This document shows positions 2,303 to 61,962 of a stretch of DNA of 64,000 bases, in pieces. Origin of the DNA: Macrostomum lignano. Lineage: Eukaryota. The notes below the pieces were generated by a model. It did no database searches. It was not told where the DNA came from and saw only the letters and a list, made by a program, of their open reading frames with translations. The stretch lies in contig NIVC01000349.1 in the NCBI GenBank assembly GCA_002269645.1, positions 310,001-374,000 of the forward strand. Direction: 5' to 3'. The position numbers were made by a program, and so were the translations under genes. Within the stretch, counting starts at the first letter, position 1, and each line of letters begins with the position of its first letter.

Positions 2303-2548
2303 AGTAGTATATAAAAAGACGCTTCTAGACCCAGAGGCACCTATTAAACAGCACATTTGAAGGGCTAGAGGGGGGACACGGGGGGAAATAAAAAAAAACA
2401 CAATTAAACAAAATTAAACATCCCCAATACCCCCAATAACAACAAAAATAAAAAACACCATCAACACTTCCAATCAAATCCCCGTGTCCCCCCTATTAGC
2501 CTTCCAAATCTCCATTTTCAATAGGATCTGATCTAGAAGCGTCTTTTT
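2303..2548 (+). repeat. Left TIR of the Polinton (imperfect hairpin)
   Basis: Reverse complement of 10085-10328 with few mismatches. It begins ...AAAAAGACGCTTCTAGA and ends TCTAGAAGCGTCTTTTT. Confidence 0.95.
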
Positions 2549-2560
2549 CTGTTACTAAAA

Positions 2561-2875
2561 ATGAACCGAGTTTACACCTTTTCTGTTAGTGATACTTTTG
2601 AGACTGTTGCTAAAATTTCAGAGATTATAAAACAGCATATTTTGAATGGAATAATTGATGAAGTTTATTTAAAATATGATGACAAAACAGAACTAAAACT
2701 TTATCCATTAGAGTTGGATGGTTTGTATGATTTAGAACATGAGGGTGAGTTAATATTTCAACTTGGAGATTATTTAAATTCGGATGATTGGGAGGTTCGT
2801 TCAGATGATTCCAACTCAACAAATAGTTCATATGAAACTAGCGATTCGGAGAATGAAAGTGAAATTTTTATGTAA
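2561..2875 (+). CDS. Small acidic Polinton ORF, unknown function (paralog A)
   Basis: Intact 104-aa ATG ORF directly inside the TIR. It shares IDEVY...K(L/I)YPLE(L/I) with the next ORF. Confidence 0.6.
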   Translation: MNRVYTFSVSDTFETVAKISEIIKQHILNGIIDEVYLKYDDKTELKLYPLELDGLYDLEHEGELIFQLGDYLNSDDWEVRSDDSNSTNSSYETSDSENESEIFM

Positions 2876-2878
2876 AAA

Positions 2879-3109
2879 ATGGAATTAGTTAACAGACCCT
2901 ACTTTTCAATAACTGAATCAACCCAAACAATATTCAATGCACTCGATTCAATAAAAAAATTAATAAAGGATAAAACAATCGATGAAGTATATATATTTCC
3001 ATATATAAAGATATATCCACTTGAAATTGGAGAATTAGATTATATTTGGGATAAGGGGGAAGAAATTCTTCTTTTAGCACAATGTTTAAACTGTGAAAAA
3101 TATATTTAA
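2879..3109 (+). CDS. Small Polinton ORF, unknown function (paralog B)
   Basis: 76-aa ATG ORF starting 3 nt after the ORF A stop. It contains IDEVYIFPYIKIYPLEIGEL, similar to ORF A. Confidence 0.6.
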   Translation: MELVNRPYFSITESTQTIFNALDSIKKLIKDKTIDEVYIFPYIKIYPLEIGELDYIWDKGEEILLLAQCLNCEKYI

Positions 3110-3386
3110 AAAAATGAAGGTAAACTATTCCTACATCGGAAACGTACCGGTTAATGAACTTGATGAAAATTTAAGTCTAATTACTGTTGAACAAATGTCA
3201 ATAATTATATTAGTAACAATAATAGTAATAATATTATTTTTGTTTGTTATAAAAATTTACTACCCTGTTGCCTTAAGTAATTGTTCGAACTTAGTTCGCA
3301 GACATTATCTGGTTCTCATAAAACGAACCCAATATTTCTTCACCATCTTTATCAGCAATGATATAGGTTGTAGGATTTGTATTTAA
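3093..3386 (+). CDS. Possible small single-TM protein
   Basis: Hydrophobic run IIILVTIIVIILFLFVIKIYY. The 3' part overlaps the integrase antisense, so the true end is uncertain. Confidence 0.3.
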   Translation: MKNIFKKMKVNYSYIGNVPVNELDENLSLITVEQMSIIILVTIIVIILFLFVIKIYYPVALSNCSNLVRRHYLVLIKRTQYFFTIFISNDIGCRICI

Positions 3387-4891
3387 AACTTTACTGATAG
3401 TAAATTTCTCACTTATCTTCCAATATCCTTTTCTTCCCTTTTCAAACTTATCTTTCCATTTATAGATATAAACAGAATCACAAACTTTAAAAGGTTTAGT
3501 TTTCTTTTTTTTCAAACTCTCCAAAAGTAACTTTAACATTTTCAGGGTTGTTATAAGCTTGTTGAGGAGTCATCTTTATAGTCGAATGATATGAATTATT
3601 ATAATCTTTCACGACGTCTGGTAATATTTTTACCAACTTTTGGTTACCATTCAGACTAAACTAAAACCACAATTTCTTAACTAAAGTTCGATTAAATCTT
3701 TCAATCAGACCGTTTTTGCTTTCTCCATAAATAGAATAAATTTTATTAATATACTCCCCATTTGCGTCTTTTTTTCCTTTCTTGTCCTTTTTCAAAATGA
3801 TATAATTTATACATATGATGATTGTAAAATTCTTTTCCTTCATCAACACATAAACGTTCACTTTTTTCTCCAAGGCTTCTAAAAGCAGAAGCAACTACTT
3901 CTCCTTTTTTGGATTTCAAAGGAACACCCCACGCATATCGAGTAAAACCATCAAGTATGGTTAAGATATATTTATATCCACGATCACTCGGCATTGACAT
4001 TAAATCAGCATACCAAATTTCATTCTTTTTGAAGTTCATGATTTTTCTATAAAATTTAGGCTTTCGGTATTCTTTGTGAAGAACCTTTGCCTCATCAGAA
4101 CTTAACCCACTACCACTTAACAACAAACACTCAACACAATTATTTCCATGTTGGTTGTAATTAATTCCCAAACCAAATTTAACTTTAGACTGCAGGATCT
4201 TTTTAACCATCCACCGAGTTAATCTCTGGCTTACCGACAGCCCTTGTAAATCATCTAATCCTTGAATCATTTTTCGATCGGCTTCATGTTTTAATCTTAA
4301 TGCTTCCTCGGGGGAGTTCTTATCAGCATCTCTGTATGCTAAGTCATGATAATATGCTAACCAATCAATACCATTAATGGGAATTGAATCAGCTTTTGGA
4401 GTGTCATCAGGGTTTAATCGGAGATCGAGTCGAGTCAACCCGGCCTTTATACCTTTGCTTTCACAAAGGAGTAGACTGTGTCTTAAGCTATCATTAGGAT
4501 TGACTAAATCCTTCAAGCCCACCAGCGTACAGTCGTTGCATCTCAACCATACTCAAGTCATACGAGGTTAGGTTTTCGATTCACTCTTGCCCATATATCT
4601 TCAAGCTTGTTACCGTTGGGAAGAGGAGTTACCTCTGTTCCTTTGTAATCTTTCGAAAACAAAGTGGTACTTGAAGCTTTAGGGGATTGAGTGAGCGGCT
4701 GGTGTTGCCACAAATAGTGACTAGCAGTAGGTTTGCTTCTACCACTTGGGCACAGCTCGAGCTCCACCCGTGAATTGATGTGACGGCAGGTGTAACTCAC
4801 CTGTATATTTTCCAGTAGTAAAAACGCTTGGTAAGCTTGTTAATCCTTTTTGAACATCCAAAAATCCACCTTCATACACAAGTTGGTTCAT
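3291..4891 (-). pseudogene. PLA2 (parvovirus VP1u/adintovirus-type)-integrase fusion gene, disrupted
   Basis: ATG at 4891 gives MNQLVYEGGFLDVQK...GELHLPSHQFTG. A ~320-bp insert follows, then RLDLRLNPDDTPKADSIPINGIDWLAYYHDLAY (PLA2 HD), then in frame WYADLM...LTILDGFTRYAWGVPLK...VDEGKEF, NGLIERFNRTL, YNNSYHSTIKMTP and PFKVCDSVYI...KFEKG. There are frameshifts near 3800-3850 and 3500 and a stop at 3661. Confidence 0.88.
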
Positions 4892-4893
4892 TT

Positions 4894-5374
4894 TTAATGT
4901 TTAAAAAACGTTTCTATCAATTTAATAATTTCTATATATTGATCACCATATAAAAAATTTAAAGCAAATTCCCCAGTTAACAAGGTAACACCATTATCAA
5001 ATTCTTTTTGGATTGGGTTTTTAGTAGTATTATTAATGCAAGTATAATATAAATCAAATTCGGGATTAACATATTTAAATTCTAACAACCTTTGAATATT
5101 TCTAAATCTGCTTGAAGAATTATCTGTATTATCAGAAGATTTCAACTCTAACGCAATTTTTCTATCCGTATGAATTAAATCAATTTTATTTACTTTCTCA
5201 AAACCAAAATGTTTAATAGCTAATAATTCATAAAGAGATCCAAGACGCGTCTGAATTGTTTTAATACGATTTGAAATTATTAATTCATCTTGAAATATTT
5301 TTATTTAGTATTCTGTCAGATCCAATCTTTTTATCAATAGGTTTATAAAGACACCCTTTTATTGTTTTATCCAT
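4894..5374 (-). CDS. PD-(D/E)XK nuclease resembling type II restriction endonucleases (Eco47II-like); one homopolymer frameshift
   Basis: ATG at 5374. Removing one base from the run at 5298-5302 gives ~160 aa: ...RIKTIQTRLGSLYELLA...KIDLIHTDRKIALELKSSDNTDNSSSRF...LYYTCIN...VTLLTGEFALNFLYG. The D...ELK catalytic pattern is present. The ORF track shows only the C-terminal half. Confidence 0.6.
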
Positions 5375-5396
5375 TTTTAAAAAAGTAAAAATTTTA

Positions 5397-6038
5397 TTAA
5401 TTAAGTCCTGTATGTCCAGCAGCTTTTGCAGCGGCTAGAACTAGTTTTCTAGGAGTTTTAAATCCTTCACCAACAGCCCGTTTGTTATTTACAGAATCAA
5501 CAATCCTTTTATACAATCTGGTGTTTTTAGCAGATCTTACTCCTAGCTCATCATAAAAATTTTTAGCACTTACTAATTCATCCCTAGTATATAATTCAGG
5601 ATTAAACACTACCCTAGGGTTCATAATAATATTATATGCTCCACCCAATTTTCTATATAGTTCATTCCGATTTTTATTAACCCCACGAATTTGATAATTA
5701 TCATTACCTAAATCAATCACAGCAATACTTCGTGGTGCAGCTCTCTGATATTCTTCAACTCCACCCCGCTCTCCAGCACGAATCTCTGCAACCCTCAATA
5801 GTGCTTGATCAACATCATAAGCAGGTGGCTCATCCTCCACAACATCATCCTCTTTTGGTTCCGTATTCTTAGCAATTTTTTCAAGAAGACCTTTATCAGT
5901 TTTGGTTAATTCGCTAATTTTCCCCGTAATAGGATTAACAAAAGGAGCAGCAAATCGTTCACCAGCTTTTTGAAATCCTAACTCTCGATTAATCAAGTTT
6001 TCCATAAAATCTGAATGTTTTTCAAATGTAAAACGCAA
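5397..6038 (-). CDS. Polinton accessory protein, unknown function
   Basis: Intact ~200-aa ORF packed head-to-tail with the nuclease gene. The C-terminal LVLAAAKAAGHTGL resembles a motif I recall from Polinton/adintovirus accessory proteins (unverified). Confidence 0.5.
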   Translation of the reverse strand: MRFTFEKHSDFMENLINRELGFQKAGERFAAPFVNPITGKISELTKTDKGLLEKIAKNTEPKEDDVVEDEPPAYDVDQALLRVAEIRAGERGGVEEYQRAAPRSIAVIDLGNDNYQIRGVNKNRNELYRKLGGAYNIIMNPRVVFNPELYTRDELVSAKNFYDELGVRSAKNTRLYKRIVDSVNNKRAVGEGFKTPRKLVLAAAKAAGHTGLN

Positions 6039-6666
6039 TAGACAATAATTTCTTGAGTTTTTTTACATGTAAAACTGAATAAATAATGGGAAAATAACTT
6101 ATTGTCGACAAACCACTGGTTGACCGGTTTTTCCATTTGTTCACCTTCTTTTGATACTATGGTAATGATCTCATGTTCCATTGAGATTAACTCTCGAAAC
6201 CTGGGGTCGAGCTGCACCTTTTTACGTATCTGAGTAATAAGTAATCGAATTTATTTCTTGGAAATGCTGCGACATTCTTATCTCATTATCGACCATGTTA
6301 TTTTTTTCGAAGCATGGCACACTAGGGAAAGAAAATCTTCAATTATCAAACCAAAAAGCAAAATAATAAGCAAAATAATGCGGAAAGCAAGCCAATAAGC
6401 AAAATGATAAGCAAAGCAACACAAAATTGTAAGCAAAGTAAAATACGAAGTGCTAAGCAAACCAAAAATTAAAAAAGAAAATATAAGGAGGTCAATGAAA
6501 AAAATTATGAGCAATAAATCAGCCATGAAGTAATTAAGTATTAAGCAACTAAGCAATTAAGCTATTAAGTAAAGAATTGTAAGTGATCTAAATCGATTTT
6601 TTAAGTATGTTTAAGCTTTATCTTGTATTGATTTCTGACGGGAATATTTTTAGAACGAGTTTTATT

Positions 6667-7266
6667 TTAATCGTTCAGCCACTTACAACTCTCCAGAGTT
6701 TCCGCGTCCCTAGGGCCGTAGTCGAATAAAAGTTCACGTCCCTTCGGAACATATTTTGTAGTCTGGAAATATAGGGCCGGTCGAATCACGCCTCCCGGAC
6801 ATTGGACACCGGTGGTGACTACTCGGCAGTTTTTTTTTGTCCGAGAATGATTTAAGAACCTTCCGACGCGATCGGTGTCCGTGGCGTCGATAGCATATTC
6901 CCGGCCATTGAAATCAAAGTTAAATAAAAAAAACGTGTCTTTGTCGGCCTCGGCGAGCTCGACGTAGCGAGTGTCGGATTCCGTCTTGCTAAGAAGCTTA
7001 CCTGCATACTCGCATACGTATGCTCCTCTGGCGAGGGCACACGCAGCAAAAGCTCCGCGGCCTTTGCTCCGGGTAGCACTAACAGTTACTGCTGAGTCAT
7101 CGTTGTTAAGGAGCCGCCGGAGGACTTCTGCTTGTCCTGCTGCCTTTCGGGCACCCTTTAAGCTAGCTCCCCGCGTAGGGCCGCGGATAGTGACGTCGGC
7201 AGGGCCTTCGTCGTCGCCACTGCCACTGCCGACGTCGCCACTGCCGAATGAGGCATCGAGGTCTAC
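6667..7266 (-). CDS. Terminal exon of a SETD8/PR-Set7-like SET-domain histone lysine methyltransferase
   Basis: Manual translation, 199 aa, no stops, after an AG acceptor at 7268-7267: ...SKGRGAFAACALARGAYVCEYAGKLLSKTESDTRYVELAEADKDTFFLFNFDFNGREYAIDATDTDRVGRFLNHSRTKKNC...ALYFQTTKYVPKGRELLFDYGPRDAETLESCKWLND*. The GxG, YxG, RFxNHS and ELxFDY motifs and the SET8-type post-SET DYG...WL end are present. Absent from the ORF track because it has no early start codon. Confidence 0.9.
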   Translation of the reverse strand, partial: VDLDASFGSGDVGSGSGDDEGPADVTIRGPTRGASLKGARKAAGQAEVLRRLLNNDDSAVTVSATRSKGRGAFAACALARGAYVCEYAGKLLSKTESDTRYVELAEADKDTFFLFNFDFNGREYAIDATDTDRVGRFLNHSRTKKNCRVVTTGVQCPGGVIRPALYFQTTKYVPKGRELLFDYGPRDAETLESCKWLND

Positions 7267-7490
7267 CTATATTTTTTCAATTAAAGTATGTATGAGGCTT
7301 GTATGAGCATGTAGAGACTTAAAGTATAACCTCAACTACGAGGTTAAGAGCTTATGGACTTACGATTTAGGACTCAAAATACAAAAGGTATAAAAGAAAA
7401 TAATACGGGTATAAGTAAAAGTACTTTAAAAGTAGTAGATAAAAGACGAAAAATAACAATTAAACCAGACAATAAATATTTATTACATAC

Positions 7491-7960
7491 ATCGAATAAT
7501 GGCCCTCCAGGCAAGGATCCATTAATAACGGACCGACGCGCGTCCGGTGTCTATATTGAGTAGTATTTAGATCGAATGAACATTAATGTACATCTTGCTA
7601 ATTTACATCTATACGATATCGTAGGCCTGTGTAGAATCTGGGGCAAGGTATCATGCTATGCCATGCTATACTATACTACGAGCTCGTAAAATTTGCGCCA
7701 GGGTTTCTATGCTATCTTTCTGCATAGCGTGCTGAATACCGCTTATATAGATCTGCTACAAGTAAGTAAACGTGAATACTAGCAGATACAAAATACTTAC
7801 AGCGGCAGCAGCGGAGCTGGTGGTGGTGGAGGTAGCAGCGGAGGTGGCGGTGGTGGAAGTAGCAGCGGAGGTGGCGGTAGCAGCGGATGTGGCAGTGTAG
7901 GCGGCCGTCATAGTGGCACCGGCAGCACCGGCACCGGCACCTTCAGCTGGCTGGACAGGT
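7491..7960 (-). CDS. Probable upstream small exons of the SET gene (Ala/Thr/Ser-rich exon plus three short exons)
   Basis: A GTAAGT...TTGTAG 45-nt intron lies at 7800-7756. Phase-compatible GT-AG joins give ...SAAAA/QIYISGIQHAMQKDSIETLAQILRAH/STQAYDI/TPDARRSVINGSLPGGPLFD/VDLDASF... The splicing is inferred only. Confidence 0.4.
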
Positions 7961-8636
7961 TATATTTGAGGTTATATAAATATATTTAGCTAAAGTTATC
8001 ATGTAATTTTGATTCATTTGCCCTTAAAAGCATGGAAAACTTACTTGGAAAAAGCGTGTTGGATAATAAAAAGATTATTGGACACTGAACACTAAACGAC
8101 TTGATTGTGCTTATAAACTTTTTTATAAGTTTGTAAATTGACTACTTTTTTTATTTAAAGCTTTCGCAGAAAGACTATGAATGCTTAGTTAAAATATGGA
8201 ATTAAGAATTGGTATCTAAAATTTTACGGCTTTCACTAGGCATTTTTGGGTTTGGAGAACCTTGAACCGATTCTAGGGTCCTGCGTTGGCTTATAATGAG
8301 GACGTGCTGAATTCGCAGCATTTCTTTTAGCCAGGCGTTTTCTGATTCCAAAGCTCGCATCTGCTTTTCTCGATTCTAGTTAAATTATATATTTAAAATA
8401 GGGGAAATCGAGAAAATTACGCATCGTTAAATATTTTTAAACAGCTTATTTTTTTCTCAAAATCAAAAACAATACTTTTAAACGGTTTATTTATTTCTCA
8501 AACTCACAAATCAGATAAAATCAGAAAGAATATAATAAAAAGAAAGAAAAGTTTTTCAAATAAGATAATGCCTGAACCTGAATTATTTGCACAAATAAAT
8601 TGTCTTAAAGAAATAATATTATAATTATTATGTAAT

Positions 8637-8930
8637 TCATCGACGCTTCCGCCTGGCTGCTCGCTTCTTGGCGGCGTACATATTCTTAAATTTAGGCTCA
8701 TACTTTGAGCTATAATAAAATGCCACACATTGTGCAATAGTCTTGCTATGGATGGCGGCGGCGATCTTCGAAAACTCTTTGCCGAATTTTTTAAACGCCC
8801 GTAAAAACTGGCCCTTCTCGTCTTCTGTCCAATTTGCGAATTCGCTTGAAGCGTACTGAATCCTGCGCGCCAGATCACTTTGCGCAGAATTCAGTAAATT
8901 AAAGTGCGTTCTACACGCAAGCGTCTTCAA
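8637..8930 (-). CDS. SANT/Myb-like domain exon (ELM2-SANT/NCoR/CoREST corepressor type)
   Basis: WTEDEKGQFLRAFKKFGKEFSKIAAAIHSKTIAQCVAFYYSSK matches the TRERF1/MIDEAS/MIER-type SANT pattern. It is preceded by a TTTCATTTAG acceptor and followed by the basic tract KKRAARRKRR. Confidence 0.8.
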   Translation of the reverse strand: MKTLACRTHFNLLNSAQSDLARRIQYASSEFANWTEDEKGQFLRAFKKFGKEFSKIAAAIHSKTIAQCVAFYYSSKYEPKFKNMYAAKKRAARRKRR

Positions 8931-9046
8931 ATCCTAAATGAAACAAAATTGAACATTAAATGCACGAACCAATACGGAAAAGAAACCAATATAAGAAACC
9001 AATTTTAAGATCAAGATCAAGTTACAAGTTCTTGCCCTTGAAAATC

Positions 9047-9643
9047 TTAATGATCGCCATTATAAGTCATTATCGTGCCCATTGTGTACGTAGAAAAAAT
9101 AAGTCCGGGAAAATCGAGGCAGAGTTGATAGTACTTATTGAATTGTTCTACTTTCCAAGTAGTAATAGTAAATTTGGCGGCTATGTCTGCATCTCGCATA
9201 GCAAACTTCGAACTTAGATAGTAAATGAGCCGCCCCTGCTCAAACTGCATCATCGCCTCAGCTACTGTAATGTTCTCTATAGAGCTCACCAATCGTTGAA
9301 ACCGCTCGATCAGGCCGTTTTGGTCGATGCCATCCAATTGGTTCGCAACAAGACCTAAGCCGTTGGTGATAGATTCCATGCAGATGCGAATGCCTCTCTC
9401 AGTTTCCTCCAGCTTCCAAATGATCCTCTCGAGTACATTATCGCGACTAGTCTTCTCATTCTTACTGGTTGCCACAACTTTCCTTTGTGGTACTCCGTCT
9501 AACTTTTCAAGACTTGTTTGGAAAGCCTTCAACTCCTCAGCGGAGAAATCTTTAAACCTAACACCAAGCAAAGATCGTTCTTTCTTGGACATGGAAGCCA
9601 CCATCTCAACTATCGTTGAAATTTGCACCTTTTTAGATGACAT
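9047..9643 (-). CDS. Orphan 198-aa helical protein in the Polinton right arm
   Basis: Intact ATG ORF with a natural amino-acid composition. No family is recognised. Confidence 0.55.
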   Translation of the reverse strand: MSSKKVQISTIVEMVASMSKKERSLLGVRFKDFSAEELKAFQTSLEKLDGVPQRKVVATSKNEKTSRDNVLERIIWKLEETERGIRICMESITNGLGLVANQLDGIDQNGLIERFQRLVSSIENITVAEAMMQFEQGRLIYYLSSKFAMRDADIAAKFTITTWKVEQFNKYYQLCLDFPGLIFSTYTMGTIMTYNGDH

Positions 9644-10074
9644 GATACTCGTACTAGAATTTGTATGCTAAGCAAAGCTATATGTAGTTGTGCCTAAATA
9701 AGAGACTATTTGCTGTGACTAGTTTTTTAGATTTCATCATTCTTATACTCACAATTAGAGCTTGGGGTGGGGTGCTGAAAATAATAAAAGCGCTTTTCAT
9801 GAGTAAGCAACTCACTCACCTTCCTGTTGTAGCCTGTTTGAGTCTGAGGTTTGCGCTTCGGTATATGATGGGTATAATAGAAACCCCGAATTCCCGCGTT
9901 AGTCATTAGACTGTCTGCGACCCTTTGGGGTGATCATGCAAAGTTTTTCCTTTTGTGAGCTGCCTAAGATAGTTAAAACTGTTCCTTTTCTATGGCTCAG
10001 TTTGGGTCAGAGTGTGCCCCTTCGCGCCTGCGGCGCGGCCTGGAGTTACAGTGTGTTTGTGTGTGTTTGAATGT

Positions 10075-10328
10075 AGTAGTATATAAAAAGACGCTTCTAG
10101 ATCAGATCCTATTGAAAATGGAGATTTGGAAGGCTAATAGGGGGGACACGGGGATTTGATTAGAAGTGTTGATGGTGTTTTTGATTTTTGTTGTTATTGG
10201 GGGTATTGGGGATGTTTAATTTTGTTTAATTGTGTTTTTTTATTTCCCCCCGTGTCCCCCCTCTAGCCCTTCAAATTTGCTGTTTAATAGGTGCCTCTGG
10301 GTCTAGAAGCGTCTTTTTATATACTACT
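10075..10328 (-). repeat. Right TIR of the Polinton (imperfect hairpin bounded by a perfect 27-bp inverted repeat)
   Basis: AGTAGTATATAAAAAGACGCTTCTAGA at 10075-10101 and its exact reverse complement at 10302-10328. Confidence 0.95.
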
Positions 10329-13300
10329 CACTAGCATTTCTTTACCAATCAGTTTGCCATCTTCTTCCTTCTGGATCTTAAATACTACTTCAGATATTTG
10401 AGCTATTACTCGGAATGCTGATCGCTTCTTTCTATGAAACTTGTGTGACTCTTCGGCGTCTAGTTGGGGATTGTTAATTAATGCAAGACAGCCTATGGGG
10501 ACTCTCGGGGGAAGCTTATTGGTTTCTGCGGCGGTCTTTCTCTTGTCAACTATCTTTTCCAATTTCTTCTTTACTACTTTGTAGGCTTCTTCCAATCTTT
10601 CGGTGTGTTTAGTAATATATAAGAGGGATAATCAGCGTGTTCGGCTGCGCTTCTGATTTGAGTATCTAAGGGTAGAGTAGCTTCTCGGCCGAATAATAGG
10701 AAATGGGGGGAGAATCCTGTTGTTACATTAGTGCTGGTGCGAACGGCTACTAGGGCTGCGGGAATCAATAGATCCCAATCACCGTGATCCTTATTGATCA
10801 AGCAGGTGATAATTGACTTAACTTGCTTATTAAAGCGTTCAACTAATCCATTAGATTGAGCATGATAGGGGGTGGTAAAGGTGTGGCGAATATTATAAAG
10901 TTCGCAGAAGGCTTTAAATTGTTTGCTGGCGAAAGTTTTTCCATTGTCTGTGTGGATCCAGGTGGGCTGTCCGTATTCTGCTACTATTCGTTCAAGTAGT
11001 ATCTTGATGACCGTATCTGATTTTTGATTTCTAATGGGGAAAGCAAAGGGGTATCTAGTTGTGCTGTCGACTATTGTCAAGACATATTTGTGTCCTCGCT
11101 TACTCTCTTTCGAGATTGGTCCGATTATATATATATGCAGGCGGCTGAATGCTTCGCCAATGGGGAACGACTGAACTGGGGCCTGAAAAAAGTGTCCTTT
11201 CTTGCTTTCAAGGCAGGGGATGCACTCAGCAATTAACTGCTCAACTGAGGTGCTCAGTCCGGGTCGCCAAAATCTTTCTCTGATGCGCTGAATAGTCTTG
11301 TCTCTTCCTAGATGTCCTGCGAGGGGGTTGCAGTGTAGATCGATAAAGACTGCTTTGTCTAGGGATGGGGGCAAAACTACTTAACAGATCGTTATCGATT
11401 TTCATGGCTTCGAAATGTCTACTCGATTTTTCTGGCACGTCCAGTGATTTGGGGAATTGGCTCAGTTTCTGATTCTTGGCTTCTAGCAGAGCTTTAATGA
11501 TGGGGTCAGCAGCTTGGGCTTCTTGAATTTGTTCTTTCTTCAGGGGGCTGGGGAGATAATCGGTTAACAACTTTTCACATTTTCCTGTCTCTTCTTCACT
11601 TTCATCACTGCCTGAGACATTCAGCTTTGTCCTAAATTCGGGACATTCAGTCTGGGTCTCGCTTTCTGTCAGGGCTTCAGGTGACTGGGACATGGGGTTG
11701 TCCTTAGTTTCAGCGGGAGCACTCTCATCTCTCAGGGGAACAGGGGTCAACTTCTCGACTTTCTCAGGGATTGGCTCAGGGTTCTCAGGAATTACTTCAG
11801 ATGCTTCAGGGGCTTCAAGGATTGCTTCAGCAGGCTCAGGGGCTGCTTCAGGGACTTCAGGGTTTGCTTCAGCAAGTTCAGGGGCTGCTTCAGGAGATAC
11901 TTCAGGGGCTTCAGCTATCTCAGCTGGTCTTCGCGACAATCCGTCGGCATTGGAATGCTTTGCGCCGCTTCTGTGTTCAATGTCGAACCTGAATTCATTT
12001 AGGCGCTCTATCCATCTTCCTAGGATTCCGGTTGCTTCTGTCTGTCTCATGAGCCAAATTATTGCTTAATGATCAGTTCGGGCTAAGAATTTCTTGCTGA
12101 TCAGATAAAATCTGAAATGCCTCATAGCGTCGACAAGGGCTAACAATTCTTTCCGAGTAATGGGGTATCGCTTCTCTGATTCTTTCATCGCTCTACTAAA
12201 ATAAGCTATTGGTGGCTCTATGCCATCACTCTGGATTTGGCCAAGGCATGCGCCAATCCTGTCGTCACTGGCATCTGTGTCGAGCACCATCTTCACATTC
12301 TCATCTTCGACATATTCGGGGTATGCTAACACTTCAGTGGATATCATTCGCTGCTTTAGAGCTTCAAAGGCTTCATCATGCAATTTGCTCCACTTAGATC
12401 GGAAATTCTGGACTCCTTTTCGAGTCAATTGGAATAGGGGGTGAGCCACTTTGGCATAATTCTTTACAAATCGGCAATAATAGTTGCATAGGCCAAGAAA
12501 ACTGCGTAATTCTTTTACGTCTTTGGGACGGGGCCAAGTTTAACTCGTGATGGAAAAGATTGCACTTTTTGGGTCTCAACTTTAGACCTGCGGCAATTAG
12601 TCGCTTGAATACTTCTCTCAAGTGCTCTAAATGTTCGGCAAAAGTTTGGGAGTAGGCTATTATATCGTCCATATAGGACATGGCGAACTTATGCTGGACT
12701 CCTAATAGGACTAAATTCATTAGACGTTGGAAGGTTCTGGGGGCATTGGAAAGTCCTTGGGCCATCACTTGGTATTCAAATTGGCCTCTAGTTAGGGTGG
12801 AGAAGGCGGTTCGATGCTTATCTTCTTCTTTGGTGGGGACTTGCCAGTATCCTGAGTTTAAATCAAGGCTGCTAAAATATTGGCTACCAGTTAGGTGGGA
12901 GAAGGTCTTTTGGATATTGAGGAGGGGGTATTTTTTATTAGATGCAGGGGGGTTGTGTGCACCCTGGCGCACTTTAAGCGACATAGGAACACAACCGGCG
13001 AGAGGCATTACTGCCCATTCCGCCGACTCCCCTGAGCAGGCATACAAGCGCGCGGATACGTACGCAGGCACACACTCACACAGGAGTGTACAGCGGCCCT
13101 AACTTTATATTATCGTTAGGCATGTACACTTCACTGCGCCTTGGGGGGTTGGCTCTCAAGGCCGTTAATTGCACGAGCAGAGCCAAGCCGAGATTCCAAT
13201 TTAGCCCCAAATTAATGTGACTGCACTTGGAATCGAGCCTGGGTCGCTGGCACACCAGAGCAGCTGCGCTACCGCTGGGCTACGGCCCCCCTTGGGGAGG

Positions 13301-15330
13301 GGGTAGGGGTAGTAATTAACTCTTGAGTTGAGTACTCGGAAATCGCTGACTATTCTGATGGAACCATCTTTCTTGGGGACAATTACTAGGGGGGTGGAGT
13401 AGGTTGAATAGCGGGGTCTAATTAAGTTTTTAGCTAACATGTCATCTAATTGGGCGTCAACTTGCTTTTGCAAGTGTGGGGGGATGCGTCTAGCTGGGAT
13501 CCTAACGGGGGTGGGGTCTTTAATAGAGATTTCGTGGGTTACTAAGTGTGTCAGGCCCATGTCTAGTTCGTTCTGGGAAAAAGCTTCACGGTTTTCTTTC
13601 ATTAAGTCGATGACTGCTTTTCGCTGTTCATCTGTCATTTCAGGGCCAAGGCTCACTTCATTAATCCATGAGTCTTCTGTACATTGGGTCTGGTTGACTT
13701 CTAATTGTACTGGGGTACCGTCAAATGTACTAATGCTTTTACTAGTTTCTTGAATTTGATCGGCACGGAATAGCTTAGACCAGGTTTAGCGGCTCAGGAA
13801 ATTATTTCTGGCGCCTGTGTCTAGCAGAAAATCAATGGTCTCTTTTTGAATATCACTGACAATAACAGCTTCATAGCCTTCTAGCTTAGTCAGGTCGATT
13901 CGGGATGGGGAATTGGGTTTTGGCTTTCGTCGCTTCCTGGGATATCGCATGAACCATGGGATACATGGGGTGCAAGCGCAGTGGGTACACGGGGTGCGGA
14001 CGCGTGATAAGCAGACTTCGCATTGGTTACATGGGGAGCAGTCGCATGAGCTGTAGTCGCATGGGGGTCATTGTACACTTGGGGGTCATAGGGGCAATTG
14101 GCGTGACATCGTCGATTTCGTCGCAAGCGAGTAATTAGAAATTATTGGGTGAAGTAAATATCGCATTATTTACAGGCATTGGCTGTACATGGGAGGTTTT
14201 GCGGGGATAGCGGAAACCGTACTGGGGAGGTAGCCGGTATTTTGGTTGGGGGCATTTTTGAATGATGGGGAGGCCGGAGAGTAAGCAGAATTTTGGCCTG
14301 AGGGGCGTGGCCTCTTTTCTCTGGCTTCTGGCTTCTCAGTTTCTCGGATTCTGGGGATTGCGGGTGTTGCGGAACTTTAACGGCTCATATCTTGGGTTGG
14401 GAGGCTGACGTTCAGCGTTCCTTCTTGGGGGTTCACGTCTTGGCGGTTGGTTCATCAGCTGGGGCCTGTACTGCTGCTGAGGTTGCGGCCTGTACTGCGG
14501 CTGGGGTGGCTGTCTGTTCAGCTGAGGATTTGGCTGCCTGTACTGCTGAGGGGGTGGCTGCTTGTACTGCTGCTGAGGAAACACCTAAGACGGCGGGGCG
14601 CATTGCGCTGTTTCGGCTAATTGCTTCTGCAGATTCTGGATGAGTTTATCTTGGCGATCAATCTTGGTCTGCTGGTCAATGATCAACTGATCTGTTCTGA
14701 CCTTGTGCTCCTCTTTCTCATCCTTTGTCACTCTAATTCCTCCTTTGTGGGACATCTGGTAAGCAGCTTCAATTCTGCGCAACATTCTACGGGCGGCTTG
14801 GAGACTAGCAGGTTGGGCAAAAATTAGCTTTTCACGGGTGTGGGGAGGGGTTCTTACACCTTTAATAAATTGCTCGACAAGTTCCTCTTCTCTTTGCTTA
14901 GCATCCATGTTCAGGAATGCACGGGAGGCTAATTCTATTAGGGCGTCAGCGAAATTGTCTGTGGATTCGTTTCTACCTTGGCAACGGTTTCGGAACTCTT
15001 CGCGGAATTCGGCGGAGCTTCCTACCTTTCCGAATCTCTATCAGTCTTTCCTTGAATTCCTCATAGGGGAGATTAGCTGGGAGGTTGAGGCGTTGGACTG
15101 CTGCAAACGCAGTGCTTAAATCTAAATTAGTGAGCAATTCCTGCTTTCGATTCTCTTCTTCGATGCCTTCGTTCTCACATCGCTGGTCGAATGCGGTAAG
15201 CCAGATTCTGATGTCTTGGCTGGGGACGTATTTCTGTATTTTCACGTGCTTAAGGGCACCTAGTTCTAATCGATTACGGAGCCCTTCGGCTAAGGGCCAC
15301 CTCCGGGACATGTGTTTTCGCCCCAGAGAG
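10329..15330 (-). mobile_element. Gypsy/Ty3 LTR retrotransposon gag-pol, degenerate; no LTRs found
   Basis: gag (IRIWLTAFDQRC; EEELVEQFIKG), protease (IDFLLDTGA near 13811-13838), RT (TPLVIVPKKDGSIR; LDLNSGYWQV; YMDDII), RNase H (VLDTDASD; KELLALV; RWIERL...HSNADGLSR) and integrase (H...GHLGRDKT...C..C; IHTDNG; SNGLVERFN) in PR-RT-RH-IN order. There are many frameshifts. Confidence 0.95.
12931..13291 (-). mobile_element. tRNA-derived SINE inserted in the Gypsy RT
   Basis: Head GGGGGCCGTAGCCCAGCGGTAGC (A box) and GGCTCGATTCC (B box), A-rich tail AATAAAAAA, and a 14-bp TSD with 1 mismatch (12917-12930, 13292-13305). Removing it restores YPYPLP-NIQKTF. Confidence 0.85.
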
Positions 15331-16968
15331 AGCCACCTTTTTCTCAGTACGGAAGCCCGTCTGGATCTCCTTGGCTGGGAATCCATCAATCCTGGCATCT
15401 ATCTCCTGCTGAATGCCGACCGGTGCCTTGGCGATTTCTCCTGCGAGGAGCATGTGGCCAACTTTGGTGCGGTTTTCACTGGCCCACTTGCCAAGAAATT
15501 TAGGCACTCCGTTGTCGGCAAAAATCTTCTCCAAAGCTGCCTGGTACTCAGTGGACGGCTTGCCCTGCTGGCTGGGCACACCGGAAAACACCTAATCTGC
15601 CATTCTCTTGGCGTTGAACTCACCTGTCAGATTCTTGTCAAGTCCCACCACGATCAGGGAGACTTATTCCACAAAGCCTTTTGCTCCAAGAAGTGTCCCC
15701 TTCAACTCACCGGGAACCGGCAGCAGCTTGCCTGACTTCCTGGACCCTTCTGTTTGAGCTGCAGAAGGGGTAGTAGCTCTGCCTTTAGCAGTTCCGGACG
15801 CAGCAGGCTGACTAGCCGAACTTGACTCAGCGCTCTGAGTGGCATCGTGTGAGGCCTGTGAAGCAGAAGAGGCACTCACATGCGGCTCAGGTGGTGGAGG
15901 AGGAGGCATCAAGGACTGCCTGCGCACTCCAACCAAATCCATTAGCAGGGCGAAATCCAGGTCCACCCCTTCAAGCTGAGTGATGGTCACGGAGTCGAAG
16001 TCCTCAATTATCACATTAGCCCCTAGATCCTCCAGATCTAGAGCCTGATTGACTCCATTTGCGGCCATGACAGCAGCGCAAAATCCAACTACGGCACCCT
16101 GAGCCGTGTTGCCGAATGCGTTTGGACCTCCTCCACCTCCTCCTCCGCCTCCTCCGCCGTTGCCTCCACCTCCTCCGTTAGCACCTCCAGGACCTCCGTC
16201 TCCAGGCGGCGGAGGGGAGGCGGTGGAGCACCACCGGCAGCGCCCCCAGCAGGTGGGGTGCGGAATGTGACGTTGGACAGGGCTCCGTTGGGAATTGTTT
16301 TTGATAAACAGAAACAGCGACTGGTTGACTGTAGTGGCCAGCTGGTGCAAGACATGTTCTTGCGGCAAAGTTGTGCCCGGCAGGTTCTGGTGTGCCTGTA
16401 TGTTCTCGATCTCGTTGATCGCAATGAACGGATTGTTCGCCATAGTTAGCAGCACCTCTTCACCTGCGTTGAAAATGCAGGCGGCAGCCATTATGAACCT
16501 GTGCTGTGACATCAGACCAGGATTGTCGTGTAATGCAGCTGCTCTAGTGTCGTTGAGAGCCGGCCTGACTGCAGCAGGCTGACATGCAATCCATCTCTGC
16601 CAGTTGTTTCGCCCGATGTGCAGACTCCTGGAAAAGTACCCGATCCGGGTCAGTGTGAACCATCCTTGCTCCACGTTCAGATAGTGTGCCTGGCAGTGGT
16701 GTATATAATTGCACACATAGTCGAGCATAAATTTGTTCGACATGGTGATAGCCGCCGCGTTCCCCACTTGACAGAAATTTAAAGCAGCTGCTTGGAAGCT
16801 CAATCTAGCTTCGGTGCGCGCCTCACCAGTGTACCCTTCATCCAGCACAGAAATGTCTGGCACGATACCCTGGTTGAACATGTTCAAGAGCCCTCTAGCC
16901 AACCTCGACCCTCTGCCACCGTTGTTGCGCACCTCGGCAACTGGCAAAAAGTGGCAGCATCCATTTCA
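15274..16968 (-). pseudogene. Orphan ~560-codon ORF immediately upstream of gag (possible endogenised RNA-virus gene)
   Basis: ORFs 15664..16947 and 15274..15591 are in the same frame, separated by two stops (TAA, TAG). An upstream ATG (MDAATF) joins if one T is added to a T5 run. The layout is a folded N-terminal half, a Gly/Pro tract, an acidic stretch, a Ser/Ala linker and a folded C-terminal part. Confidence 0.55.
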
Positions 16969-17283
16969 GCTTTGCTAGTAACTTAATTAGAGAATAAATA
17001 AAGTAATGTTACTATTCTGTAATGTTATCTACGACTTGAACCATACAGGCAAGTTTTTTGTACTTTATTGCTACTGCACCGAATAGTTTGAGAGTTTTTA
17101 ATTTTACTAGTTCTTACCAGATCCTCCACATTGGAGCGCAAAGTCACGCAGCGCGCATGTCTTTTTTCGGCCCGATTGAATATGCAAGGGTTTGAATAAA
17201 ATAAATGGTCATCTACAGTTGCAGCAAGGCTATTTCTATCGCTTGTTTTTCCAGTTAGATGAAGGGAAAAATCAGCCATACAT

Positions 17284-17439
17284 GCGCAACCTTGGGAATC
17301 ACTCGGCCGTTTCTATTGGCAACACACATATGTAAGTCGCTATTGGCTGAGTGCAGTCACGTGACTACTATTCCGCCCAATAGCGACTAACATGTGTGTT
17401 TTGCCAATAGAAACGGCCGGGTGAATCCCTAGGTTGCGC
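17284..17439. repeat. 156-bp imperfect palindrome centred on GTCACGTGAC with four CCAAT/ATTGG boxes
   Basis: The left arm GCGCAACCTTGGGAATCACTCGGCCGTTTCTATTGGC... pairs with the right arm ...GCCAATAGAAACGGCCGGGTGAATCCCTAGGTTGCGC. Confidence 0.85.
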
Positions 17440-17639
17440 CCAAGCATGAAATCAGCGGAATGCCGTGGTTCACCCACTTCGATATTGACAATCTCGCCAC
17501 AGACATCAGGCTTCAACCAGCCTTGTCGGCCGTCACATATGATGCAACGTTCACACGTGACAGGCGCTTGTCCAGGTTGCGCAGTGTAGCAAAACACGAA
17601 GCCTGATTGACGAGGCGGAAAGCTTCCGGCGACGATGTT

Positions 17640-18510
17640 ATCGCCTCCACTTTTGCCAGCCCCTCGAGGTCAGCACAGAGATGGCATTTGTAGCATCAAG
17701 TACTGCACAATCAAGCTGGGACTTATTCAAGCAGCGCTTGATTCGAGTGACAAAGCTGCGATGAAGGGCTCCTGCCAGCTTGCAGATATCGTCTTCGATG
17801 TCCTGTGTAAAAATGCATATTTTAAGGATATAAGTTACATTAATGGAAATATGATTGGATGAATCACTATATTCTACATTTTGCTCACGAAGTCGCCAAT
17901 GGATGGGACCACCAGGACGACGTCGCCTGCCAGGAGTCTGAGGTGAAGCCTGATCATCAGGGGCAACCTGAATGAGCCAACCCTCTAGCAATAGGACGCC
18001 TGCGAATTCGCTATCTGGGCAAATTGAGTCGGCAAACTTGTCGTTGCGAGGATAATCCAGCCTGATTAATTTATTAAACTTCGTCAATTTATTTAACTAT
18101 GTCCATTTTAAAAAGGCGCCTAATTTTGTCTAATGAAATAATATAACTCATATATACATATCAAATTATGAACTCATACGGCTAATAGAAAACTGTGAAA
18201 AACTTAAACAATATTTCATCTCTAAACCAACCTGCAAAAGCGTTCGCCTCGCACATGAAGAAAATCGGCTACAGTCTTCCAAAGGGTGCCAACCTTCAAT
18301 GAGGAAGTTGGCCATCTTGAAGAATACTCATAAATGCTTTGAAAGGTGCCAGAAGGTCTTGCAGACATAAGAGCTCTATGACAAAGTCACTGCCAAACAT
18401 TTCGTACTGAGATGTTTTATTTACTCCGCAGTTCGGATTTTCTTTACGAAACGCGTCGTGTAACTGATCATAGGCGTCTGCGATGACTTCCCACTGTCTC
18501 ATCAAGGAGC
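17640..18510 (-). pseudogene. Probable hAT-like transposase C-terminal fragments
   Basis: DFVIELLCLQDLLAPFKAFMSILQ resembles the hAT FVxxLxxLxDILxxLxxLSxxLQ segment. Further exon-like pieces lie to the left. Confidence 0.35.
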
Positions 18511-18511: not shown

Positions 18512-19630
18512 CAGTGTAGTAACTGAGCTTTTGGTTGCTTGGGGTTTTGCAGTCTATTCCACAGCTATCACCAGTGAAGTGGCTCTCCTTTGGCGTGCTT
18601 GGGTTATGTGGACTGCTGGTGTCCGAGGCAACCTTGCTAAGCACTCGTAAGTGGGCTGAAACTGGGGAGAATTCTAAAATTAAGGGTAGTGCTGCCACCA
18701 GCGTGGGGACCGTAGGATCCGCGATGAAAGGGTCTGTTTGGGTTCCAAACAGCTAGAATAACTGGTCTCCGAGATTTCAATGTCCAAATGACAGGACTCA
18801 ATGGTAGCAAATGGCCTAAGCAGCGCAGTCCCGGCACTGACATAATGTCCGCGCTTGAGCGTGTCTGAGTTTGACTCTCAGAGGATTCCTAACTCCTACT
18901 AACCTAATAGCTACATCTCGCGCAGATGGGCAGCGAGGAATAGGTATATGCGCCTGCAGCAGCAATAGACTCACAACTGACTAAGTCTAACAACTATTTC
19001 TTCGAATCGCGCACGTGTGCTGCGACTGCACAATCACTCTCACTCTTATATTCGCGCCTGTGTCGCGAATAGATAATCAGCAGAATGGCTTTAGCCAAAT
19101 GATTTCCTGCCAATACGGTAGGCTAGAAAACAGAGCTATAGCACTAGCAATGCTCTACCAAGACCAGCTCAGGAGCTTTGCTTCGCTGTAACCGGCGCTT
19201 GAGAGCTGAACTTAGAGAAAGCTCTCGACAAGTCCCCAGGAGGCGGTTCTGCTGGGAAATTCAGACAAACGGCCTGCATGCATTGATATAAAACGCGGAG
19301 GGTGGAGCGTTTGGGCATTACATGGGTTAACCATAGAACGGCAGCCCGAAGAGTGTGGATAATGATGCACGACAGATATTGATTAAACATGGGGGGAGGA
19401 GTAGCATGAAAATAGCATGCCAAATTTGGGCTTGTGCGCACAAGGCTGCACAAGGGGAGGGTTCGGCTCGGGACACGGGGTGCGCGAAGTCCTCAGTCTA
19501 AAAATAGAATGACGTATGGGGAGAGGCTCGGACGCAGGAGGAACGAGAGAGCAAGAGGGGGAAGGGTAGTTTGTCTAAAGCGCCGACAGTCGTCTCAAGC
19601 CACTAGTGAAAATAGCATGCCCAAATTGGG
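18512..19630 (-). mobile_element. 5' UTR plus ORF1 N-terminus of a LINE related to the 38-45 kb element (3'-truncated)
   Basis: Colinear similarity to 44190-45312, with synonymous differences in the frame LDIEISE...VAALPLIL.FSPVSA...QKLSYYT. Confidence 0.75.
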
Positions 19631-20249
19631 CTTTTTTGTATTTTTTGAAAGCCAGCAAATTAATTTTTATGCCATGTTGTAAAAAAAATAACAAATATGC
19701 TCTGAGACCCTGACATTCCGTCGTTCAAACAACTAAGAAAGAGTGAAGAGGAAGAGAAGGAATTATACTAGATCGTGCCGCTGCTCATCAAAGTTTTGCA
19801 GCTCGTATTGATACTCTTAAAGTACTATCCTAACTGGGAGTCTTGTCCAGATTGATTGGCCTAATGTTCTAGTGAGTACTCCTGTCCTAATATCCCACCG
19901 AATTGTCACCAAGTTGTTACAGACGTGTTGCCTCTTTCCTACAAAATCCTACTAAATGTCTGCTTTAAATAGCGTTGGCTGCCCTAAACTATGGCCTTTC
20001 TTAGAAATTTCTAATTTCACACGATTTCTTAGAAACCTTGTGATAGCGTGTAGTGCCCGAGCGGTAAGACACTGTCTAATTCCCTAGTTCAGTCCGAAAG
20101 TCTAGCGTTTTCCGGGGATCAAGGGTGTCCAGCGGTGACTAATTTGTTCTCCTAATGCCTAATCTCTTTAGCGCCTATTGTCTATCGTAGCCTGTACGGC
20201 TTTCTTAGGGTCTGTACGCCCTCGAGATTCTCCTTCTGGCCTCTATCCT

Positions 20250-20400: not shown

Positions 20401-21883
20401 CACTATTCTCAAACAAATAACGAGATGAGTCTTAGCCAAATTTAATTTGTTCCACTAAGAGCTTCTCGCAACAGCAAGAACTGTTAAGAGCAAAATGCCA
20501 AACAAGAAAAGGTTATTTTATTTTAGAGTTGACCCGGATCCCTTTTATACTAAATTTTTGGGGAAGAAGGAATACATTGAAACAAAATTGGTGAGTTAAA
20601 ACAAATTTAGCAAGAATTAAAACAAAAAAGGGATAGCATTTAAACAACTAAAGAAATTATTTGATTGGTTGAGAAATTGGTTCGCGCTTAACTACTGTTA
20701 GTAGAAATTGTAGGTTAATTAAATCCTGCCTCACTAAGATAAAGATAGCTTTGAGAAGGAAAATTAATGCGTGAATTTCGAGTACAATGAAAGCATAGTA
20801 GAAGAGATCACTAAATGCTAACATTGTTCTTGTTGTTCTTGTAGCAGACGCTCAGTTAGATAAGTACTAAGTAGGTGCAACAGTGTGTGACAAGTTGAAT
20901 AAATTTTATTGTCAAAATATCGCTAACAGAAAAAATAAATTATTATTTTTCGGTGCACTAGCTTTAATTTTTTGGTGAATAAAGTGGTTGTGAAAGTATA
21001 AAAAGCGCCGCTCAATGCATGTAGCTCACAATCTATTGTACCCGCTGAATTTTTCAGTTTCTTATATTTGAGTGCTTCATAGTAGCAATATTGGTAATTT
21101 TTAAGGCTTTTTCTGTTTTAGCAGCATAATTAGCAGTGGGGATGTCGACCCCGAAGACTGCTCCCCGGGAAAACGGGGAGCCTGTCGGGACTCCCCGGCC
21201 AGGGAATTAAACCGGGGACCCTTCGGTGGAAAAAAATGCATTTGTAACTTATTTTTTCCATTTTTGCCAAATAAGAAAATGATAACCAGAAAGCTGATTG
21301 AAACTCATTCTATGCTTTTTTACTGCATAACTGCGACAAAGTTAAAGTTAAAAAATGCCACTTAATATCCAAGTTATCCGCCGTTTTTTTACTTATTTTT
21401 CTTTTTCCTGGGGTCTTTAGGGTCCCCGGGGAATGACAGTAAATTCATTACGAAGTCATCTATTCTGGTTTTAAAGGGCTTTCAATAATAAAGTATAGTA
21501 CAGAACGAAGTATTTTTTCTAATCAGTGACTGACATTGAGCTCTGAATTGGAGTGTGATGTACGGGCTGGTATATTATGTCTTTTTTTACATGCCAGTAT
21601 CAGCTCAGGAAAATCACACTTGATTGTGATGTGACCTAGGGAATGATAGCTTCTTTCCTCATAGCTTAAAGGGATATGGCCCGAGGTACTGATAACGTGC
21701 AGGGTAGAAGGGGATCGGACCTCACCCTCCCAGAGGCACCCTATGCTGGGCATCTGAAAGGTGTTTGACAGTGCTGAGAATTAATGAGGTCTTTCTCATA
21801 GGAGGGGGGGGCTTCTGGATTTGCGCAAGGTCGAGACCCCCTGATTTAAGCTGGGTTTGAGAAAGAGGGGGAGTTCAAATGTA

Positions 21884-61712: not shown

Positions 61713-61962
61713 AAGATCCTGATATTCTGCACAGCACCCCAACAAGCTAAATAAATAATTGCGTCAAATCTTAATTTCACACAAATTTACTCCATTTTAT
61801 GTTTATCTCTATCCTAACTTTTAACAAGTTTTTGTTTGAGTGTGACTTCAGATGGTAGACAATTAGTATAGTTGGAAGATGCAATATGTTTAGTTATAAG
61901 CTACATTTAGCTTATAAAATGGGGGTTTTAAAATGGACTATATGCTCTCTGGACGGGACGCA

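Follow-up and report, generated by a model that had tools for sequence, protein, structure and literature searches.

A 64-kb stretch of the Macrostomum lignano genome (the window, hereafter) contains, on its minus strand, an exon-sized frame resembling the catalytic domain of the histone methyltransferase SET8 (SETD8/PR-Set7/KMT5A), and this frame lies between the terminal inverted repeats (TIRs) of a transposable unit with ends of the Polinton/Maverick type. How did such a sequence come to lie in a virus-like transposon, and is it a working gene of the element or a passenger? The explanation that we favor, with modest confidence, is that a non-autonomous Maverick-type remnant carries the captured terminal exon of a SET8-family paralogue, located in a host-like insert. 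In the text, P-numbers (e.g. P0003) denote relative proteins, and L-numbers (e.g. L091) related loci or contigs.

Minus-strand translation of positions 6667-7266 gave 199 sense codons (6670-7266) followed by a TAA stop (6667-6669), and all of the motifs quoted in the initial annotation were present: KGRG, EYAG, IDATDTDRVGRFLNHS, ELLFDYG, and a C-terminal ...LESCKWL. The frame has no methionine codon and no ATG, GTG, or TTG start, and for this reason was absent from the mechanical list of open reading frames (ORFs), as had been stated. Directly 5' of the exon, a TAG stop doubles as an AG acceptor (...aaaaaatatAG/GTAG/AC), and two AG acceptors are possible, with the exon starting at 7266 or 7262. 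An AATAAA polyadenylation-type hexamer, read from the sequence (6661-6666, minus strand), begins 1 base after the stop. With its acceptor, stop, and AATAAA, the stretch is thus built like a 3'-terminal exon.

The exon matched the SET profile of Pfam (PF00856) over positions 1-105 of 105 (E=2.5e-15; 57.2 bits, cut-off 22.4). In a sequence search of the PDB, the best 14 matches were human SETD8/KMT5A (E 1e-17 to 8e-15), the next family being SETD2 (E=2.5e-11), and the alignments ran from the N-flanking helix through to the final ...WL. Judged by their E-values, the Pfam and SETD8 matches are far beyond chance. A word-indexed protein search gave a single weak Pre-SET/SET match, and an exhaustive search was needed: a HMMER pass over 1.84 billion (1.84e9) representative proteins yielded 2221 matches at the threshold of E<=0.001. 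The named matches that were looked up (from corals, mussels, flatworms, and a sea cucumber) were all SETD8, KMT5A, set-1, or [histone H4]-lysine(20) N-methyltransferase. When a 16-sequence alignment of the SET8 family, with 24 invariant columns, was used as a reference, the exon retained 24 of the 24 invariant residues (catalytic and S-adenosylmethionine (AdoMet) site). The AlphaFold (AF2) model of the exon showed a mean predicted local distance difference test (pLDDT) score of 85, with 126 of the 199 residues at 90 or higher, a helix at residues 34-53, and terminal helices at 188-198. Foldseek comparison of this model with the PDB gave SET8 as the top 24 matches (E~3e-15; target-normalised TM of 0.75-0.88), followed by MLL1 (E=5e-11); the input alignment of the model consisted of SET8-family sequences. 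The layout comprises an N-flanking helix, the SET core, and a short C-flank that ends in ...WL at the end of the protein, with no Cys-rich pre- or post-SET region, and the basic stretch ahead of the N-flanking helix was kept only in part. Sequence, named matches, invariant residues, and predicted fold all pointed to SET8, and assignment of the exon to the SET8/PR-Set7/KMT5A family is sound. This agreed with the initial annotation, including its description of a short post-SET region ending in ...WL (SET8 chains and family members were aligned through to their last residue), and among SET subfamilies the best matches were to SETD8/KMT5A and not to another one.

In comparison with human SETD8/PR-Set7/KMT5A (PDB 1ZKK, 3F9W, 5TEG, 5HQ2, and 7D1Z), query residues 30-198 were aligned up to the chain end, and the GxG, EYxG, NHS, and ELxFDYG motifs, N-flanking helix, and short C-flank were common to both. 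On the other hand, identity was ~28-35%, the conserved His-Pro before WL was replaced in the exon, and the exon lacked the N-terminal regulatory half and a start codon. Furthermore, there was a 3-5-residue insertion before the last strands, otherwise found only in P0003. This protein (349 residues; Logan assembly SRR19430222) was the nearest relative of the exon (46% identity, E=3e-33), and shared with it the small loop insertion and the PALYF and LLFDYG variants. The two were reciprocal nearest neighbors and paired in 196 of 200 bootstraps (98%) of a neighbor-joining (NJ) tree, on a long branch; canonical animal KMT5A orthologues (30-41% identity with the exon) were placed apart from the pair. 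Unlike the exon, P0003 is a complete protein, in which two C2H2-like motifs and a low-complexity linker precede the SET domain. Only its residues 189-347 (C-terminal ~160 residues) have a counterpart in the window, and no match to its N-terminal parts (C2H2-like motifs and linker) was found anywhere in the window. Only the catalytic half of a SET8-like protein, equivalent to the C-terminal 46% of P0003, is present in the window. The retention of all 24 invariant residues at 46% identity shows long purifying selection somewhere in the past of the exon, but is no sign of selection within the element.

The position of the exon became clear by comparison with related elements of M. lignano. The TIR-proximal gene of the unit (6104-9646, minus strand) is a homologue of M. 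lignano P0195 and P0196 (54% and 47% identity, 97-98% of the query covered), and is broken by one ~2.8-kb insertion and then a premature stop, its last ~30 codons not being found. When the M. lignano protein was aligned to the window, its N-terminal ~200 residues and the ~40 that follow fell on two stretches separated by ~2.8 kb; in both L091 and L092, these residues are encoded contiguously. Because the gene is continuous in both M. lignano relatives and split by ~2.8 kb in the window, SET is a secondary, host-like acquisition that disrupted an element gene, and not part of the gene set of the family. A SET gene was absent from these two M. lignano loci, from six metagenomic contigs of the integrase family described below, and from L006. 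The earlier claim that a chromatin-writing enzyme had been captured was therefore borne out in part: the sequence was acquired and not native, as the two SET-less relatives indicate, but the "enzyme" is a single start-less exon.

The inserted DNA contains, all on the minus strand, a SANT exon, a short ATG ORF, a GC-rich Ala/Thr/Ser repeat, the SET exon, and an AT-rich tail. The SANT exon, of the CoREST/NCoR type (8640-8933, 98 codons, stop at 8637-8639; Pfam Myb_DNA-binding, E=4e-10; PDB RCOR3/RCOR1, E=3e-10), follows an AG acceptor that has a pyrimidine tract, and has a basic tail before its stop. Located 1.4 kb upstream of SET, it shares insert and orientation with that exon. This arrangement may be a coincidence or a chimeric gene; since none of ten long SET8-like matches carried a SANT/Myb domain, a SANT-SET8 architecture was rejected and the exons are probably pieces of two separate genes. 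Between them, two candidate 5' exons were found. The GC-rich Ala/Thr/Ser low-complexity stretch (7801-7950), composed of imperfect 9-18-nt repeats, has an ATG at 7911-7909 in phase 0, and a candidate intron of 35% GC (7267-7800), which starts with GTAAGT and ends in ...tatAG, is in frame with the candidate exon 7801-7911. The short ATG ORF (8205-8360) is the alternative, with a donor after 8261 (phase 1) that fits the acceptor giving the SET start at 7262. Coding-like blocks of the insert had a GC content of 43-69%, and spacers 22-35%. The GC content at third codon positions (GC3) was 0.53 in SET and 0.52 in SANT, similar to resident retroelements (0.44-0.52), while the values of the integrase-module genes were 0.14-0.33 (0.18 in the ORF at 5400-6005); the TIR-proximal gene itself was host-like (0.49). 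A duplication of 15-34 nt around the junctions, noted by eye, was not significant against shuffles (p=0.66 for left versus right; for the extensions, p=0.70 and p=0.03) and was discarded as evidence of mechanism or age. The idea that the 2.8 kb is an intron within the broken gene was also rejected, no in-phase donor being seen by eye.

The carrier measures 8026 bp (2303-10328). Its arms, a left TIR of 246 nt (2303-2548, plus strand, starting 5'-AGTAGTATATAAAAAGACGCTTCTAGA) and a right TIR of 254 nt (10075-10328, minus strand), form an inverted-repeat pair that flanks the SET exon, in keeping with the initial annotation, and 241 of 245 aligned bases (98.4%) were identical, with 4 differences and two gap events. 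Each TIR is itself a foldback, in which the outer and inner ends are joined by a perfect inverted repeat of 27 nt in the right arm and by an inverted repeat of 17 nt in the left arm; the equivalent in M. lignano L091 (9257-9524) is 84 nt long at 85% identity. The element ends read 5'-AGTAGT...ACTACT-3', and identical copies of the 6-bp sequence CACTAG at 2297-2302 and 10329-10334 represent the target-site duplication (TSD), read from the sequence as a direct repeat and not an extension of the TIR. TIRs of tens to hundreds of bp, (AGT)2...(ACT)2 or (AG)3...(CT)3 ends, and a 6-bp TSD are hallmarks of Mavericks (PMC8097293, from which we took these criteria). The ends and the TSD of the unit fit them exactly, and its length is below the 12-25 kb of Polintons/Mavericks (PMC8097293 and PMC4028283). 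The insertion site is the pol region of a Gypsy-type long terminal repeat (LTR) retrotransposon (10335-13098, minus strand; integrase, RNase H, and reverse transcriptase (RT) by Pfam), the frame of which reaches the insertion in one flank and continues below 2297 in the other (the flanks were read separately). The target retrotransposon spans 10335-18100 (minus strand), including a 433-codon gag-like ORF at 15667-16965. The view that the arms are two independent miniature inverted-repeat transposable elements (MITEs) instead of TIRs was rejected: neither arm has a flanking duplication of its own, the outer flanks share the perfect 6-bp duplication, and the backbone genes next to each arm are those found there in the relatives.

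Between the arms, the backbone is heavily damaged. The integrase gene (3294-4900, minus strand), with PLA2-like, rve, and SH3/chromo-like parts, is colinear with the intact P0169 (74% identity) and with P0172 (57%) but spread over several reading frames. Its core and C-terminal part contain one premature stop and two or more frameshifts, and a stretch near the N-terminus is disrupted, with seven in-frame stops; the earlier statement that the integrase is broken is thus correct. In Pfam, its rve domain gave E=1e-07 and 32.5 bits (cut-off 32.6), and the PLA2-like domain E=0.03. Two further backbone ORFs follow on the same strand. One of 136 codons (4897-5304) is weakly similar to RE_Eco47II (Pfam E=0.002), has no start codon, is shorter than its 233-residue relative, and shows 64% and 32% identity to integrase-adjacent genes in L007 and L003, respectively. 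The other, of 202 codons from ATG (5400-6005), is open and has 31% identity over 206 residues (E=5e-10) to the L006 gene directly upstream of the integrase. Besides the SET exon, other ORFs of the 8-kb unit are also open. Two tandem, mutually similar small acidic ORFs lie inward of the left TIR (2561-3106, plus strand), with no Pfam match and no match in related loci. The domain content was assessed by Pfam in the three minus-strand frames (the plus-strand frames were without a Pfam scan): only rve, Myb/SANT, and SET were detected, and no polymerase, ATPase, protease, or capsid gene. By a second route, a tblastn search of the window with proteins of the related elements, none of these genes was found elsewhere in the window. 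The unit is therefore a non-autonomous remnant, from which one large internal deletion removed the central module.

The affiliation of this remnant was inferred from its relatives. The window integrase had 26 relatives, many of which are 380-460-residue fusions of a parvovirus-type PLA2-like domain with rve; the relatives scored above the rve cut-off, and P0176 passed both cut-offs. The PLA2-integrase fusion was seen in the window at 3294-4900, in P0175-P0184, and in the loci L002 and L006-L008. The PLA2 domain is a known marker of the virion modules of Alpha adintoviruses/Polintons (PMC8502044); unlike the adintoviruses, in which PLA2 is described as a separate virion protein, the window family has it fused to the N-terminus of the integrase. 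Genes for double-jelly-roll (DJR) capsid proteins occur near integrase relatives in L007 (45.5 bits) and L002, and one for an A32-like ATPase in L003. The window and its relatives also have small neighboring genes in common, namely the RE_Eco47II-like ORF (L007 and L003) and the homologue of the ORF at 5400-6005 (L006). In M. lignano L091 (contig NIVC01003616.1), the same terminal 34 nt of the TIR is followed by the TIR-proximal gene, with a homologue of the 1175-residue replicase-like type downstream, and in L092 (contig NIVC01003267.1) the TIR-proximal gene is followed by capsid, ATPase, and replicase-like genes; nucleotide identity of the window TIR and first gene to M. lignano was 72-76%. 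Because relatives of the integrase and the TIR-proximal gene adjoin capsid, ATPase, and replicase-like genes, the unit can be assigned to a Polinton-like family. The largest protein of the related elements, of the 1175-residue type (L008 2369-5893, minus strand; L091 13109-16504; L004 19029-21302, minus strand), matched only Endonuclease VII (Endonuclease_7), and no polymerase, primase, or helicase match was obtained in Pfam, PHROGs, or PDB sequence searches. Its candidacy as a polymerase of the PolB type failed in Pfam, PHROGs, PDB phmmer, and a PDB profile search, and no maturation protease was seen in the window or the relatives. Since the defining polymerase was not identified in the relatives, "Polinton-like" is the safer name for the family. 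Therefore, of the Polinton/Maverick carrier originally claimed, the TIR/TSD-bounded unit with Maverick ends and an integrase family that elsewhere lies near a DJR capsid and an A32-like ATPase stood, whereas the unit itself is an internally deleted, non-autonomous remnant of 8 kb.

The similarity of the TIRs also bears on age. In a simulation at the divergence of the TIRs (4/245), a 597-nt frame remained stop-free in ~83% of cases. The initial annotation had seen a hint of selection in an intact SET frame beside a broken integrase; this argument fails, because the TIRs are ~98% identical, leaving little time since integration, and the open frame is no evidence of selection. By the same measure, the lesions of the integrase and the large deletion must predate the integration of this copy, since they are too many for the TIR-based age.

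From these observations, the following course of events may be proposed. The SET frame would be the 3'-terminal exon (catalytic domain, stop, and poly(A) signal) of a divergent SET8/KMT5A-family paralogue, travelling as a passenger in ~2.8 kb of host-like DNA with exon/intron structure, alongside the CoREST-type SANT exon. This piece probably came from a host genome by capture at the DNA level, because the intron-like spacers are retained, and would have entered a Polinton/Maverick-type element at its TIR-proximal gene. This element has also lost its whole central module (capsid, ATPase, and replicase), and its integrase is broken; for this reason, the remnant could have been moved only in trans. 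It presumably landed recently in the Gypsy pol gene, making the 6-bp duplication, with the insert already present when this copy integrated. The SET exon is most likely not an autonomous gene.

Several points weigh against this course of events. The analysis covered a single copy of element and insert, and the insert may have arrived after integration instead of travelling with the element. The ends of the insert have no TIR, LTR, or poly(A), that is, no hallmark of a capture mechanism, and the host source gene is a presumed one, the nearest relative of the exon being only 46% identical. The polymerase that defines Polintons was not found by Pfam, PHROGs, or PDB searches even in the relatives. 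Moreover, the SET exon looks usable, with its invariant residues, good acceptor, AATAAA after the stop, and two in-frame models with an ATG exon.

The last point leads to the alternative of a functional cargo gene, in which splicing would join the SET exon to an ATG exon farther upstream in the insert, and the product would be an active SET8-type methyltransferase, kept by the element lineage for its effect on host or element chromatin. In model A, 7911-7801 is joined to 7266-6670 (236 residues) with the consensus GTAAGT donor, and in model B, 8360-8261 to 7262-6670 (231 residues). If transcribed and spliced in such a way, the product would be a lysine methyltransferase of ~230 residues, dependent on AdoMet and with a SET8-type substrate channel; the expected reaction, on the basis of family membership only, would be monomethylation of histone H4 lysine 20 (H4K20) on nucleosomes. 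This alternative draws on the complete set of invariant residues despite a nearest relative at 46%, the confident prediction of a SET8-like fold, the AG acceptor together with a consensus donor whose phase fits an ATG, the AATAAA directly after the stop, and the separate, well-supported lineage formed with P0003 (196/200 NJ). Mavericks are, moreover, known to carry cargo (bioRxiv 10.1101/2022.07.12.499685), and a MELD virus is depicted with a SET gene (PMC8502044). Nevertheless, we consider this alternative unlikely. Model A relies on a microsatellite-like repeat as its candidate 5' exon, and both splice models were built from sequence alone. The exact proteins of three joined-exon models were absent from a collection of 15 billion proteins, and no record of the exact window ORFs was found. 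The insert destroys an element gene, the carrier itself is defective, and, at this age, chance would be expected to leave the frame open. Furthermore, among 82 SET8-like loci from viral and metagenome contigs (mostly short), none had a neighbor matching the genes of this element family; the metagenome scan contributed 80 of the loci kept, mostly on transcript-like contigs of 1-3 kb. Viral contigs contained no close-range relative of the window integrase or the SET exon, and an alignment-based scan of them gave two generic SET loci, one of which, L009, has a Cys-rich tail and proved to be a small SET of the bacterial type, not SET8.

A nested insertion, in which the 2.8 kb entered after integration of the 8-kb element, e.g. 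as a hidden transposon or as filler of break repair, and SET was never mobilised by the element, is distinctly improbable in our view. The segment does break a gene that is continuous in both M. lignano relatives, its composition is unlike that of the integrase module, and no second copy of the element or the insert, which would attest co-mobilisation, was found in the 64-kb window. On the other hand, the time since integration was short, as judged by TIRs of 98.4% identity, and the segment ends without a TIR, LTR, poly(A) tail, or significant duplication. Other rearrangements predate integration, and an insert that was present before integration is the simpler reading.

A more far-reaching proposal is that the window SET and P0003 belong to a lineage of SET8-derived paralogues spread by Maverick-type elements in flatworms, expressed by splicing, and writing H4K20-type methylation on host or element chromatin to the benefit of the element, e.g. 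through an influence on the silencing or replication licensing of integrated copies. We regard this as speculative and quite improbable; if true, a virus-like transposon would possess its own writer of a histone mark. The idea of an ancestral viral gene, SET8-like and native to the Polinton-like lineage as vSET is to chloroviruses, has almost negligible probability: although a MELD virus that has an adintovirus-like polymerase is shown with a SET gene (PMC8502044, Fig. 5 legend), SET was absent from all of the relatives named above, splits a conserved element gene, differs in GC3 (0.53 versus 0.14-0.33) from the integrase module, and has exon/intron structure and no start codon.

Capture of a host fragment by a Maverick-type remnant, the reading we prefer, has partial counterparts among known systems. 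Like Polintons/Mavericks, the unit has long TIRs, (AGT)2/(ACT)2 ends, a 6-bp TSD, an rve integrase, and foreign genes besides the backbone. Unlike them, it is 8.0 kb long (versus 15-20 kb), no gene for pPolB (the Polinton-type polymerase), ATPase, protease, or capsid was found in it, its integrase has an N-terminal PLA2-like domain, and its cargo is a fragment at the exon level that breaks a backbone gene. Pack-MULEs and Helitron captures are non-autonomous DNA transposons carrying gene fragments. The window carrier resembles them in having intact ends and a TSD with no working transposition genes, and in holding SANT and SET pieces of presumed, unrelated host genes in one orientation with intron-like spacers kept, and differs in belonging to the Polinton/Maverick class. 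To our knowledge, transduplication at the fragment level is not a described habit of this class. Chlorovirus vSET is a virus-encoded SET protein. Similar to it and to the MELD-virus SET (PMC8502044), a gene sequence for a SET lysine methyltransferase is physically linked to a virus or virus-like genome in the window; in contrast to both, which are described as complete, intronless viral genes of the generic SET type, the window has a SET8-family exon in host-like DNA within a defective element. Capture of cargo by Mavericks has been documented in nematodes (bioRxiv 10.1101/2022.07.12.499685), and a SET gene in a Polinton-type (MELD) virus is already in print (Starrett et al., PMC8502044, Fig. 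5 legend). The literature searched contained no paper describing SET8-family sequences in Polintons/Mavericks, Macrostomum Mavericks, or this flatworm family, and none mentioning SRR19430222. The present case, based on one defective copy, adds a new example to known events in which a Maverick derivative captures a host fragment.

If the exon is only a passenger, it provides a clean and datable case of exon-level capture of host DNA by a non-autonomous Maverick/Polinton derivative; such elements could shuffle domains of chromatin enzymes, supplying raw material for new genes and a possible route of horizontal transfer. If it is expressed, there would be an H4K20-type methyltransferase borne by a mobile element in an animal, with a bearing on the interplay between virus-like transposons and host chromatin. 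In either case, the comparison delimits a Polinton-like family of Macrostomum and metagenomes, characterized by the PLA2-integrase fusion and a replicase not matched to a known type, which merits its own description.

Other SET8-like proteins had unusual architectures. The JGI metagenome proteins P0129 and P0223 have a Ulp1-type protease (PF02902) fused to a SET8-like domain, and a Ulp1 protease domain was found in one of the ten long SET8-like proteins scanned. Since Ulp1 proteases are common among transposon-encoded proteins, SET8-like domains may be tied to mobile elements elsewhere. P0002 (Phyllopteryx taeniolatus, 4152 residues) and P0004 (Holothuria leucospilota, 799 residues) contain at least five tandem SET8-like domains or fragments, and these arrays suggest local amplification of SET8-like sequence in some animal genomes.

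The remainder of the window is rich in repeats. On the minus strand, there are remnants of three other mobile elements: a long interspersed nuclear element (LINE) with an AP-endonuclease and a 654-codon RT ORF (39994-43061), a helix-turn-helix (HTH) region of the mariner type (47226-48214), and a transposase-associated DUF4218 fragment (35037-35621). Inverted blocks of a 14-15-nt 'GCTAGC' satellite lie 40 kb apart (21873-23200 and 61941-63032), and further repeats at 53609-54183, 31841-32540, and 60586-61763 comprise a 23-nt tandem array, three copies of a 209-nt repeat, and a purine-rich tract. A direct repeat of 1.1 kb (18556-19638 and 44171-45312), with copies 25.6 kb apart, showed 80-92% identity.

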